Positions 42,135-46,031 of a DNA stretch of 64,000 nucleotides are shown here, piece after piece (positions within the stretch are counted from its first letter, which is position 1; each line of letters begins with the position of its first letter). Origin of the DNA: Tetramitus jugosus. Lineage: Eukaryota; Protista; Heterolobosea. A program made the translations under genes and the position numbers. The stretch is from contig OW569349.1 in NCBI GenBank assembly GCA_937625935.1, positions 558,001 through 622,000 on the forward strand, given 5' to 3'. The notes under the pieces were generated by a model that was not told the origin of the DNA, did no database searches, and saw only the letters and a list, made by a program, of their open reading frames with translations.

Positions 42135-43502
42135 ATGCAAAAGCAAATCGTCTGCTTTAGCACACACTGGCCTCAGTATCAATCAAGTGCATCCTCTGTC
42201 AGGACCATCAACCTGCTCCATGCACTCCGTTCGCTTCTCCCGGGTCAAAACAAGGACAAGCCCATTCTGATGTGTTCACCGCAAAAATTGTCAAACGAAA
42301 AATTGAAGGAATCCCTGCAACAAGAGTTTACAAATTTGGAAATGTGTACTCAACCAATTAATGAAGGTCTAGTGAGTAGCAAGGACAAGCTACAAAACCC
42401 TCAAGTCGTCGTGTTTGACACGTTTGTTAGTGAAGAGTACTATGGAAGAGACATTCGGTCAAAGTTTCCCCACAGTTTGACAATCTGTGACACACAAGAC
42501 ATTCGGTCATTGAGATTTTTGAGAGAATCATTGATGATGGATTGTAGTGTGGCCAATATCATGTTCCATGATTTCGATTCTGTTCGTAACACTCTCAATG
42601 CACAAAAGGAACATTTGTTGTTTTCAGAGGTGTTCAAGAATGTGTTTCCAGATGTGAATAATCAACTGTTTTTAAGAGAACTCAGTTCGATATGGAGAAG
42701 TGATGCTAGTCTGGTTGTTTCTAGTCGCGAAATTGAATTCTTGCATCAAGTTTGCAAGGTGCCCAATGAAAAGATGTTGTTGTCTCCATTCATATTCACT
42801 CGTTCGAGTGGCAATGGTGAAGAGAAGCCATCATTTTCCAGAAGGAAACACTTTATTCATATTGGTTCCTTCAGACACCCTCCGAATAGAGATTCTGTTC
42901 TCGTGTTGAAGTATCATCTCTGGCCTCGGATCCGTTCTCAATTGGGTGATGACTCGGCAGAGCTTCACATCTATGGTAGCTATACGAGTCAGGAGTTTAT
43001 CGATCTTGATGATAAGAGATCAGGCTTTAGAATCAAGAAGCTTCTTCCGTCGATTGAGAAAATGCAAAAGTATCGAGTCAATCTAGCTCCACTGCGCTTT
43101 GGAGCTGGTATTAAGGGTAAAATTGCTGATGGGTGGTCAGAGTATACGCCATGTGTTACTACATGGGTTGGAGCAGAAGGAATGAACTTCGAACCACATT
43201 ACCCCTTTGCTGGCTTGATAGCAGAAAAGAGCTGGGATGAATTTGTTGCTCACAGTGTCTCTCTCTATTTGAATGAATGTTTATGGACTGAACAGAGTTT
43301 GTTGGCAAAAACAATCTCTACTTCACCTGAATCCTATCTATCGAATGAGAAAAGTTCCAAGCTTCTTCACAATTATCTCGCAAACGAGCTCGTGAATGGC
43401 AAGAAAATGCTGGACTACACTTCAGCGGTTGTCAGGTCCCAGGATAGCAAAAATGAGTACATGTCAAAGTACCTCCAATTGAAGAAAGAGCTCCAAAAGT
43501 AA
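42135..43502 (+). CDS. GT-B fold glycosyltransferase (GT4-like, bacterial-type family)
   Basis: WPQYQSSASSVR, DTQDIRSLR, RELSSIWRSD, IGSFRHPPNRDSV, LAPLRFGAGIKGKI, PCVTT.VGAEGM. True start is ATG 42135; the track N-terminus is the translated tRNA. Confidence 0.85.
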   Translation: MQKQIVCFSTHWPQYQSSASSVRTINLLHALRSLLPGQNKDKPILMCSPQKLSNEKLKESLQQEFTNLEMCTQPINEGLVSSKDKLQNPQVVVFDTFVSEEYYGRDIRSKFPHSLTICDTQDIRSLRFLRESLMMDCSVANIMFHDFDSVRNTLNAQKEHLLFSEVFKNVFPDVNNQLFLRELSSIWRSDASLVVSSREIEFLHQVCKVPNEKMLLSPFIFTRSSGNGEEKPSFSRRKHFIHIGSFRHPPNRDSVLVLKYHLWPRIRSQLGDDSAELHIYGSYTSQEFIDLDDKRSGFRIKKLLPSIEKMQKYRVNLAPLRFGAGIKGKIADGWSEYTPCVTTWVGAEGMNFEPHYPFAGLIAEKSWDEFVAHSVSLYLNECLWTEQSLLAKTISTSPESYLSNEKSSKLLHNYLANELVNGKKMLDYTSAVVRSQDSKNEYMSKYLQLKKELQK

Positions 43503-43544
43503 ATCCCCACCTCACCCAATCCCAGGCGCAAAGTAGAGATTGTT

Positions 43545-44303
43545 TTATGTCCATGCAACAGATGAAGCAACACCCACTAAAGCACCAGTTCTTTGATCGA
43601 ATCCTAAGATTAGAAATGGAAGACCTCCACATTCACCAACAATGAAACACTTAATACCAACCAGGTGTTTTTCCATCTCAACTTTCAGCTTGGAATAGTG
43701 TTCACTATTTTCACCTGCTTCTAATTTCTTCCATACATTCTTTTTCTCAGAGATTGGACAATCCCTTTGCAATTTCATTAAACTTCTCAAATCTTCCACT
43801 GACCAATTTGCATCAAGTTTGTGCTGTGGGTCAGCAAGTAAGAAACCTTCGACAGGATCAGATCCTTCACTATCAAATTCGTCACCAAAAGAAACATCCT
43901 TCATCATTCGATGGAACTTGTTTCGCAAAAATCTGTTCATTGTCATATCCTTCCAGTTATCGTGATGGTGTCCCACTTCCTGTGGATCAACTGTAACCAT
44001 ACCACAATCCCAATATGCCCAACCTTCTGGAAATATCTCTTCATCGTCTGTAGTAACCCAATCACATGATTCAACACAAGGAACTACCCTACAAGATTTA
44101 TGATGACTGATCATATCTTCTTGATTATGTCTTAACAGTGGTGTATTGAAGTAGAGTGTCTTCCATATATTGGATTTCGCGATATGATTGTAAAAGCGCT
44201 TATTGACCAAAGTAAATGTCATTAGGTCATTCAAAGCAAGAAAAGGTACGATTTTGTAAGAAATTAAGTCTTGTGTAACCTCTTCAAATGTATGATCTTT
44301 CAT
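43545..44303 (-). CDS. F-box protein with C-terminal NuiA (nuclease A inhibitor)-like domain
   Basis: F-box FEEVTQDLISYKIVPFL..NDLMTFTLVNKRFY...IWKTLY. C-terminal SEGSDPVEGFL...YSKLK..MEKHL..IKCFIVGE...LILG....GALVGVASSVAWT* parallels NuiA. Likely ATG at 44303. Confidence 0.72.
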   Translation of the reverse strand: MKDHTFEEVTQDLISYKIVPFLALNDLMTFTLVNKRFYNHIAKSNIWKTLYFNTPLLRHNQEDMISHHKSCRVVPCVESCDWVTTDDEEIFPEGWAYWDCGMVTVDPQEVGHHHDNWKDMTMNRFLRNKFHRMMKDVSFGDEFDSEGSDPVEGFLLADPQHKLDANWSVEDLRSLMKLQRDCPISEKKNVWKKLEAGENSEHYSKLKVEMEKHLVGIKCFIVGECGGLPFLILGFDQRTGALVGVASSVAWT

Positions 44304-44459
44304 AATGGTTTTGATTTTTGGTTCTGGTGGTTGGCACAAATAGTTTTCTTGAATGGGATTGTTCAACCAATTGATCGTAGATTCAACATCTACTTCCAGT
44401 TGCGTTGTAAAGGAAAATTCAACAATCATATAAGAATAGAAGCACAAAAACCTACATTA

Positions 44460-44526
44460 CTGAGGGTTCTCGAGTAGTCTCCTATCTCAATACTAACTCA
44501 ACCTAAGAGACTACTCGAGAACTCAG
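44460..44526. other. Intergenic hairpin, 16-bp perfect stem and 25-nt loop
   Basis: GTTCTCGAGTAGTCTC (44466-44481) pairs with GAGACTACTCGAGAAC (44507-44522), extended by CTGA/TCAG. Confidence 0.85.
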
Positions 44527-44666
44527 CCAGATGGTGCTTAACTTCTCTATTCGAAATGGGAAGAGGTGGTTCCACCATTGTATGAACGTAGACATTTGGT
44601 TGTTTTGTTCATTGCTTTTGCCGCCGGACCGAACTCTCGATAAAGAAATCGATATGATTGTGTGCC

Positions 44667-46031
44667 TCAAATTCTGCTTGCGTCAGAACATTTTACATCC
44701 GTTATAGTGCTTGTTGCGACTATCGTGTTACCTAATCCCACGATGCCAATCCAGTTGCCTGAATGAACGATATCTACTGGTTTTCCTGTAATAAGGAGGA
44801 GTCGTTCAATGCTTGTTTCGTAAGTATCGGTGTCTGATAGAGCCGATGCGTCATATTGAGGGCCCATGATTCTTACGATCTGTCCTACTTTCAGAGTACC
44901 ACTGAAAACTCTACCAACAGAAATGAATTTTCGCCCATCAACTTCAGGAATCATGTTAGAAATGTAAACCATCAGAGGACCATCGTCATCGCAATATCGA
45001 ATAGCAGTTGCATATTGATCATCGAGAGGACCCTTGTACAGTAATGGATATCTATACTTCTGGGCAGTGTCTGGTGAGGGTAATCGCTCAACAAAGAGCT
45101 CGACTAGAGCTTCATGAAGTGGAAGAAACTGCCTCATTACATTGTTCAACAAATCTTTTGTGGGTAAACCCTTCTCTGATATCGTCAAGTGAACATCAAG
45201 TGCTGTTAGCATCGAATCTAGCTTCGTCATATCACGGTCAATCGCAACTCTAAACAGCTGAAAGATTGGCTCCAGAACGAATCGACAGAACCCTCGTTTG
45301 AGTCTTTTTCCGGTACTTTTGGATACTTGATCTTTCTGCCACTTCTTTGAATCAGAACAATAGTACCATTCACCCCATAGTTTCTTCCGAATTGCCTCTT
45401 CATCCATTTTGAATTTCCGTGCGTACAACTTTGCAAATTGACCGATGGTGAACGCCCAGCCAATCTTCCCAGATCCTATCGCGACATTGCCCTTGAGAGG
45501 GTCCAACTCAAATCGATAACCGAGAGAGTGATCAGTGTGGGTGGAGATGATATCATTGGCATAGTCCACTATTCTCAGAATGCTTTGATAGAGCTCTTCA
45601 GGTTCTAATTGCAGTTCAAGAATTGCACGATCAATCTTGTTGATCATTAACACCGGTACAATTCTGTTTTTGAGTGCCTGCTGAATCCGAGCTTCGATCT
45701 GATAGCATGATCCCTCTACACAGTCCACAACCATCAAGGCTCCATCACTTGTTTGAAATGAACGTGATGTGTCTTCCAGAGAAAAGTCAACATTACTCAT
45801 GGAATGTACGAGATTGATTAGGTACTCTTGTTCTTGGTAGGGAAACATGAGTGAGGAGACTACCGCTGGATACCTGAAGATCACGTCCATTTCTCTCTCA
45901 CCAGTCCTGCATTTCGTGTTCACCTTGTGAGCTGCGTTGACCAGGGTATCAGTCAAGGTACTCTTGCCATGATCTACCGCGGCTATCAGAGTGACATTTC
46001 GAATGTGGGAGCTTGTTGGTGTTGTTATCAT
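44667..46031 (-). CDS. Truncated divergent eEF2 paralog (G domain + domain II), predicted GTPase-dead
   Basis: IRNVTLIAAVDHGKSTLTD, DGALMVVDCVEG, INKIDRAILELQLEPEELYQ, GWAFT..FAKLYA, LPSP..AQKYR, GRVFSGT. The G3 motif DSPGH is replaced by HSMSN and the ORF ends after domain II. Confidence 0.8.
   Translation of the reverse strand: MITTPTSSHIRNVTLIAAVDHGKSTLTDTLVNAAHKVNTKCRTGEREMDVIFRYPAVVSSLMFPYQEQEYLINLVHSMSNVDFSLEDTSRSFQTSDGALMVVDCVEGSCYQIEARIQQALKNRIVPVLMINKIDRAILELQLEPEELYQSILRIVDYANDIISTHTDHSLGYRFELDPLKGNVAIGSGKIGWAFTIGQFAKLYARKFKMDEEAIRKKLWGEWYYCSDSKKWQKDQVSKSTGKRLKRGFCRFVLEPIFQLFRVAIDRDMTKLDSMLTALDVHLTISEKGLPTKDLLNNVMRQFLPLHEALVELFVERLPSPDTAQKYRYPLLYKGPLDDQYATAIRYCDDDGPLMVYISNMIPEVDGRKFISVGRVFSGTLKVGQIVRIMGPQYDASALSDTDTYETSIERLLLITGKPVDIVHSGNWIGIVGLGNTIVATSTITDVKCSDASRI

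Follow-up and report, generated by a model that had tools for sequence, protein, structure and literature searches.

A divergent F-box joined to a remote NuiA-like domain in Tetramitus jugosus: a candidate receptor for inhibition and degradation of EndoG

The F-box/NuiA-like gene and its product

The contig OW569349.1 of Tetramitus jugosus (Heterolobosea, assembly GCA_937625935.1) carries, within the stretch of 64,000 nucleotides that was analysed here (positions 558,001 to 622,000 of the contig, hereafter the window), a minus-strand gene for a protein of 252 aa in which a divergent F-box is followed by an acidic linker and by a C-terminal domain resembling NuiA, the inhibitor of the cyanobacterial nuclease NucA. 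A preliminary description of this DNA, made from the letters alone, had proposed that the product is a receptor of an SCF (Skp1-Cullin-F-box) ubiquitin ligase that inhibits nucleases of the EndoG/NucA type and has them degraded. The window is gene-dense, with around 41% G+C, long uninterrupted open reading frames (ORFs) and a eukaryote-type tRNA-Ala(AGC), and belongs to a genome of 26.35 Mb in 56 contigs.

The ORF is intact and consists of a single exon, with the ATG at 44303 and a TAA stop at 43545-43547, as read from the ORF list and the sequence (Table 1). Its product ends in ...GALVGVASSVAWT, the last three residues being AWT. Nothing points to an intron. Two contigs of related strains (L006 and L007) are colinear with the locus at 97% identity over about 1 kb, flanks included, with two amino-acid changes, and a soil-metatranscriptome contig (L077/L078, encoding the protein P0127) covers the whole coding sequence (CDS) at 97.8% identity with different flanks. 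The P0127 CDS departs from this gene by 16 substitutions and one codon deletion, all of them in frame. Twelve studies, with 17 public runs in all, contain the gene stretch or part of it. Eight of the 17 are RNA libraries, and contigs from such libraries are no proof of transcription. The start, the stop, the length and the colinear contigs in other strains bear out the intact ORF of the preliminary description.

Table 1. Features of the F-box/NuiA-like gene, in window positions.
Feature	Position	Strand	Basis
Whole CDS (252 codons and TAA)	43545..44303	minus	ORF list, sequence, colinear related-strain and RNA-library contigs
Divergent F-box, residues ~13-52	44148..44267	minus	Pfam sub-threshold, three-sequence profile, P0005 homologous region
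Acidic Cys/Trp-rich linker, residues 70-118	43950..44096	minus	Family alignments, models
NuiA-like domain, residues 119-252	43548..43949	minus	Foldseek, VIA, ESM Atlas, Pfam, hhalign
Loop F143-L155 with S145-E146 (counterpart of NuiA S23-E24)	43839..43877	minus	hhalign register, co-fold interface
A250-W251-T252 and stop (counterpart of NuiA terminal Thr135)	43545..43556	minus	Structural alignment, conservation, co-fold interface

To the two F-box families of Pfam (PF12937 and PF00646) the N-terminus is related below threshold. The F-box-like profile matched residues 16-52 with 18.3 bits (E 0.002) in the whole protein and with 21.2 bits (E 0.00026) when residues 1-70 were searched alone, the cut-off being 24.3 bits, and the second F-box profile gave 13.9-16.5 bits against a cut-off of 20.5. 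A profile of three sequences was made from this region, from the close relative P0127 and from the corresponding stretch of P0005, a distant homologue. Searched against the PDB, it returned 16 matches at E up to 10; 13 of them are F-box proteins, with the F-box of Skp2 (E 0.005-0.012), four FBXW proteins and Cdc4 among them. The homologous region of P0005 itself lies above the F-box-like cut-off, at 28.9 bits. Helix 1 starts with Thr-Gln-Asp where Skp2 has Leu-Pro-Asp, which leaves the leading Leu-Pro without a counterpart. In F-boxes this Leu-Pro contacts Skp1, a common feature that is not universal. Taken together, the profile comparisons point to an F-box at the N-terminus, as had been proposed, albeit a divergent one.

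The genome also encodes Skp1 (L014, E 7e-29). Its 26 Mb (G000) hold 150 or more F-box-like matches (255 candidates at first look), and many of the ORFs concerned have C-terminal domains of an unusual kind. SCF receptors have undergone a large expansion specific to this lineage, and together with the presence of Skp1 this points to F-box fusions as a general habit of this organism.

The linker between the two domains is acidic (isoelectric point 4.2) and rich in Cys, Trp and His, and every orthologue has kept it, even where the F-box is absent (P0002, P0126 and L009). A folded zinc module was considered for it; the predicted local distance difference test (pLDDT) is below 50 in both structure models described below, which give it no confident fold. 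A metal site is conceivable here, as is a second surface of contact.

A remote NuiA-like domain and its family

To examine the C-terminal domain, two structure models were compared with known structures. In an AlphaFold model of the whole protein the domain has a pLDDT of 70-90. Foldseek searches with this model gave a single significant match, 2o3b_B, which is NuiA in the NucA complex (E 5.5e-6, probability 1.0, template modelling (TM) score 0.69 by target), and a second match to the nuclear magnetic resonance structure 1j57. A wide search of 48,161 chains with VIA, in which Foldseek had no part, put 1j57 first with Z 6.0, the sole chain at Z 5 or above. With the second model, which covers residues 69-252 (predicted TM score 0.71), VIA aligned 2o3b_B at Z 12.1 (root mean square deviation 3.2 Å, 124 of 135 residues, 18% identity), and the next unrelated match was phiKZ Dip at Z 4.5. 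Residues 51-184 of this model align on residues 1-135 of 2o3b_B, so that both C-termini coincide. Likewise, the top three rows of a shape search in the ESM Atlas were NuiA clusters, two of them with a TM score of 0.69-0.70 by target, as were the three nearest entries (0.86-0.88) in a language-model feature search. Maf1 and phiKZ Dip were each tried as the true fold and rejected, at Z 4.2-4.8 against 12.1 for NuiA. The structural comparisons are decisive for a predicted NuiA fold of the domain: both models match NuiA structures first, in agreement with the NuiA-like C-terminus of the preliminary description.

The sequence identity between the domain and NuiA is 13-19%. The Pfam NuiA profile (PF07924) gave 14.0 bits with the whole protein and 15.6 bits with the domain, against a gathering cut-off of 22.1, and 12.8-14.3 bits with the relatives P0003, P0005 and P0127; the other relatives gave no match to it. 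All of these weak matches, in four family members, share one register, which covers about positions 61-127 of the 130 in the profile and ends three residues before the C-terminus. When the profile of the amoeba family was aligned by hhalign with 23 cyanobacterial NuiA homologues that had been collected for comparison, E was 0.023 over 110 collinear columns, a value that is marginal alone, and the register agreed with that of the structural alignment. By BLASTP the domain matched NuiA with an E of 2.9. NuiA was not found at E up to 10 when the domain or the family profiles were searched with HMMER against PDB sequences, and no bacterial NuiA was linked to the family when 1.84 billion representative proteins were searched exhaustively by profile. 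Because the Pfam cut-off is not reached, we use the term remote NuiA-like domain and do not count the protein as a member of the Pfam NuiA family. The profile comparison with NuiA that the preliminary description had called for thus gave a sub-threshold score in Pfam and a marginal one in hhalign, and the label "bacterial-type", in the sense of a recent origin, is not warranted: the identity and the Pfam score place the domain too far from bacterial NuiA.

The NuiA of Nostoc PCC 7120 was read from the plasmid pCC7120alpha (L004:28843-29247), where it is annotated as 'nuclease A inhibitor family protein' and where nuiA and nucA lie 8 bp apart; the NuiA fragments given in the preliminary description match it. 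In the amoeba protein the motif DSEGSDP occupies residues 144-150, and hhalign pairs S145-E146 with S23-E24 of NuiA, E24 being invariant in the 23 NuiA sequences. The same alignment pairs F143 with F21, P150 with P28, E152 with E30, F154-L155 with F32-L33, W191 with W76, and G234 and G244 with two invariant NuiA glycines. At the end of the protein A250-W251-T252 is paired with V133-E134-T135, and T252 corresponds to T135 by structure as well; the penultimate residue is Trp as against an invariant Glu in cyanobacterial NuiA. In NuiA the terminal Thr directly binds the catalytic Mg of NucA (PMC2790893, PMC5587815). Both elements are conserved in relatives, SEGSD in P0002, P0126, L009 and P0005 (down to 34% identity) and the AWT terminus in P0002, P0004, P0126, P0127 and the 34%-identical P0005, and the truncated copy P0003/L008 has lost the one along with the other: SGG stands at the first site, and the end is TIDV. 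The earlier statement that the SE-Glu and the terminal Thr are kept therefore stands.

The family is small. The 1.84 billion representative proteins, searched by word index and exhaustively by HMMER, yielded no more than four relatives, and cluster look-ups added two. P0001 and P0127, from close strains, have the same architecture as this gene; P0127 starts 16 codons further upstream, and the added Lys/Arg-rich stretch resembles a bipartite nuclear-localisation signal. P0002 and P0126, both from the assembly GCA_037189345.1, consist of the acidic Cys/Trp-rich linker and the NuiA-like domain, with no F-box in the contigs at hand; the NuiA-like module can therefore exist without an F-box. Two further copies come from Logan contigs: P0004 (L009:229-843) has two in-frame stops (TAA 409 and TGA 604) and no F-box, and P0003 (L008:454-858) is the copy truncated upstream in which the SE-Glu and AWT are lost. 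P0005, from the MMETSP transcriptome of the ciliate Protocruzia adherens, combines an FHA domain, an F-box and a NuiA-like domain ending in AWT. Provided that the Protocruzia transcript is not a contaminant, the fusion would occur in two very distant lineages. 

In the T. jugosus genome itself, searches by protein, profile and DNA motif found only this gene, and a hidden Markov model screen of the ORFs at 60 F-box loci gave no other F-box/NuiA-like gene. Two candidates that end in Thr, in L049 and L056, had Pfam matches to the F-box only and were rejected; by eye, the C-terminus of the L056 candidate resembles SPRY more than NuiA.

Relative to P0127, the NuiA-like half has a ratio of non-synonymous to synonymous change (dN/dS) of about 0.25, from 3 non-synonymous and 3 synonymous changes, and the N-terminal half one of about 0.95, from 8 and 2, the counts being too small for a test. 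It is hardly credible that the ORF is non-functional or a pseudogene in the course of being lost: even if its relatives include L009 with its stops and the truncated L008, this copy is unbroken, its frame is conserved in at least three related strains, contigs of eight RNA libraries contain it, and the dN/dS of its C-terminal domain is low.

The same comparisons bear on the part played by the F-box. The protein might be a stoichiometric inhibitor of EndoG and nothing else, with an F-box that controls its own turnover (self-ubiquitination would then free the nuclease upon a signal, in the way that ICAD lets go of CAD) or that merely tethers it to Skp1. ICAD/CAD and EndoGI are precedents for control of a nuclease by an inhibitor (PMC2790893), and such a protein would be in keeping with F-box-less orthologues in which linker and NuiA-like domain are intact, with a degenerate F-box that lacks the Leu-Pro and scores below threshold, and with an N-terminal half that is near-neutral relative to a close relative. 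We nevertheless consider it unlikely, since the F-box has been kept in the independent, very distant and FHA-bearing P0005, which argues that the link to the SCF is functional, and since F-box fusions are used on a large scale in this genome.

A predicted complex with EndoG and the proposed role

To find a candidate target, the genome was searched for Endonuclease_NS loci. Two were found, a stronger one on contig C47 (L002) and a weaker one on contig C33 (L003). Both contigs differ from that of the F-box gene, and the nuclease gene is thus not adjacent to it. The 476 aa of the protein encoded at L002:1207-2637 comprise a hydrophobic anchor at the N-terminus, a coiled-coil stretch, a DRGH motif (residue 213) and, at the C-terminus, an extension by some 100 residues; on the strength of this organisation the protein is EndoG-like.

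Residues 110-395 of this nuclease were co-folded with Mg and the NuiA-like domain. The score was 0.74 (0.74, 0.74 and 0.72 in three runs), whereas the best of three controls reached 0.00. The mark of 0.74 is reached by 51 of 78 solved complexes and by 2 of 108 mismatched pairs; for eukaryotes the figures are 39 of 65 solved pairs without a like older complex and 2 of 126 unrelated pairs. At least 90% of the contacts are shared between the runs, and the pLDDT of the partners is at least 89. The predicted interface is formed by S138, D141, F143, D144, E146, G147, S148, C225-G227 and A250-W251-T252 on the inhibitor side and by D213-R214-G215-H216, Q243, N248-R249-G250, W252-R253 and E256 on the nuclease side, that is, by the beta-beta-alpha-Me active site. 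E146, G147 and S148 are predicted to contact D213-G215, Q243 and N248-R249 of the nuclease, and A250-W251-T252 is placed on the DRGH site. The model supports binding of the NuiA-like domain to the amoeba's own EndoG-type nuclease but falls short of showing it. Co-folding with EndoG had been proposed in the preliminary description, and its outcome agrees with the host nuclease among the targets named there, with the reservation that the solved complex 2O3B may be echoed in it.

The same mechanism could be directed at a foreign nuclease of the NucA/EndoG type, from prey bacteria, intracellular bacteria or viruses. Amoebae host intracellular bacteria, and a family that is small, patchy and fast-evolving, with decayed copies, fits the pattern of conflict genes; the sole in-silico support, however, concerns the EndoG of the cell itself, the one candidate that was co-folded, and we regard a foreign target as quite improbable. 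An F-box receptor whose NuiA fold has been re-used for a partner that is not a nuclease is improbable too, to the degree given above for a mere inhibitor. The low identity to NuiA, the Trp in place of the invariant penultimate Glu, a co-fold that may be a memory of 2O3B, and similar alpha/beta sandwiches that bind other partners (Maf1 and phiKZ Dip, lower in the structural lists) could all be expected of such a protein, but both elements of the NuiA plug are retained, conserved in the family and jointly lost in the decayed copy, the end of the protein coincides with that of NuiA, and the co-fold controls are at 0.00.

The reading that we prefer, with a probability of roughly 0.45, is that of an inhibit-and-degrade receptor for the cell's own escaped EndoG, in which the NuiA-like plug would be coupled to removal through the F-box and the SCF. 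The gene product would be a cytosolic or nuclear F-box protein whose substrate-binding module is a remote homologue of NuiA. This module would bind the beta-beta-alpha-Me active site of a nuclease of the EndoG/NucA family, the likeliest target being the amoeba's membrane-anchored mitochondrial EndoG when it has escaped into the cytosol or the nucleus. Blocking would occur as by NuiA on NucA: the terminal Thr would occupy the catalytic metal, and the Glu would take the part of the scissile phosphate. The F-box would then dock the complex on Skp1-Cullin, and the captured nuclease would be ubiquitinated and removed. Such a protein could act as a fail-safe against self-inflicted DNA damage, and it would combine in one polypeptide the roles of Drosophila EndoGI and mammalian CHIP. 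A wider claim, that a nuclease-immunity domain of bacterial ancestry, the first eukaryotic homologue of NuiA, serves as the bait of an SCF that plugs and destroys escaped EndoG, in a fusion found in a heterolobosean and, with an added FHA, in Protocruzia, is doubtful.

Several points weigh against the inhibit-and-degrade receptor. The co-fold may in part reflect memory of, or likeness to, a known structure, since the like complex 2O3B has been solved, and the metal was included in the co-fold while the calibration was made without ligand. At the level of sequence the case for homology to NuiA is weak in Pfam, hhalign and HMMER alike. The F-box stays under the Pfam threshold and lacks the usual Skp1-contacting Leu-Pro, and P0002 and P0126 have no F-box in the available contigs, so that degradation is not intrinsic to the module. 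EndoG normally resides in another compartment. Glu24 of NuiA reportedly reaches into the active site of the nuclease, and the role given here to its counterpart E146 is modelled on this. Finally, the proposed mechanism as a whole is drawn from in-silico data.

The amoeba domain shares with NuiA of Nostoc/Anabaena sp. PCC 7120 (2O3B chain B, 1J57; PF07924) the alpha/beta fold over its whole length, an SE-Glu loop and a last-residue Thr in homologous positions, and a predicted seat on the DRGH/beta-beta-alpha-Me site. Unlike nuiA, the gene is eukaryotic, does not lie beside a nuclease gene and encodes the domain in fusion with an F-box and with a linker that is acidic and rich in Cys and Trp. 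In bacteria, too, NuiA domains occur in multidomain proteins (NuiA with HIT/DcpS_C in Bacteroidota, ESM Atlas), but with other partner domains and no ubiquitin system. Similar to the SCF receptors Skp2 and Fbxw7/Cdc4, the protein pairs an F-box at the N-terminus with a protein-binding module at the C-terminus; it differs from them in having an enzyme-inhibitor fold instead of leucine-rich repeats (LRR), WD40 or Kelch, and a divergent F-box without the Leu-Pro.

Two animal systems resemble the proposed role. Drosophila EndoGI (3ISM) is a stoichiometric, nuclear fail-safe inhibitor of EndoG (PMC2790893), and as an extramitochondrial inhibitor that occupies the active site and the metal shell of escaped EndoG it parallels the role suggested here. 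EndoGI differs in its unrelated tandem-helical fold, in binding both active sites of the EndoG dimer and in having no link to a ubiquitin ligase. Mammalian CHIP degrades EndoG (PMC3698548), and control of the EndoG level by an E3 ligase as a protection against cell death would be common to both; CHIP differs in being a U-box ligase that acts through chaperones and has no inhibitor domain.

None of the papers searched describes a fusion of F-box and NuiA, the NuiA papers being concerned with the cyanobacterial protein or its fold, which agrees with the preliminary description. The protein is a combination of known kinds, F-box receptors and NuiA inhibitors. If the preferred reading is true, this would be the first enzyme-inhibitor (immunity) fold to serve as substrate receptor of a cullin-RING ligase, a natural counterpart to engineered inhibitor-based degraders, and a third independent way, beside EndoGI and CHIP, of keeping EndoG harmless outside mitochondria. 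The NuiA family would then reach beyond bacteria into eukaryotes, and one would have to ask whether a bacterial gene was transferred long ago.

Neighbouring sequences

In the window the gene has three neighbours: a 5S rRNA gene, an ORF of eEF2-like type and an ORF that has no Pfam match. On the soil-metatranscriptome contig, the copy with 97.8% identity lies 31 nt from a convergent ORF that was not found in the Tetramitus genome (L077:1-1564). Either the surroundings of the gene differ between close relatives or the L077 contig is chimeric.

The 5S rRNA gene lies directly upstream of the F-box gene at 44449-44593 on the minus strand (Rfam 69.4 bits, E 9e-15). With 145 nt it is longer than the model, which has 120 positions, and the extra part coincides with a 16-bp hairpin at 44460-44526. 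A 5S copy on contig C29 (L079:1375-1500) is without the extra ~25 nt. In sequencing reads the 5S genes show an enormous depth and many different flanks, and they are therefore dispersed in the genome. A read joint that bypasses the F-box gene (43486 to 44444) was considered as a presence/absence allele and rejected, the letters at the junction being found at another locus on C29, beside another 5S copy. On the far side of the 5S gene, also on the minus strand, lies a truncated eEF2-like paralogue, the ORF of 454 aa at 44667-46031, in which only the EF-Tu GTP-binding domain and domain 2 are present.

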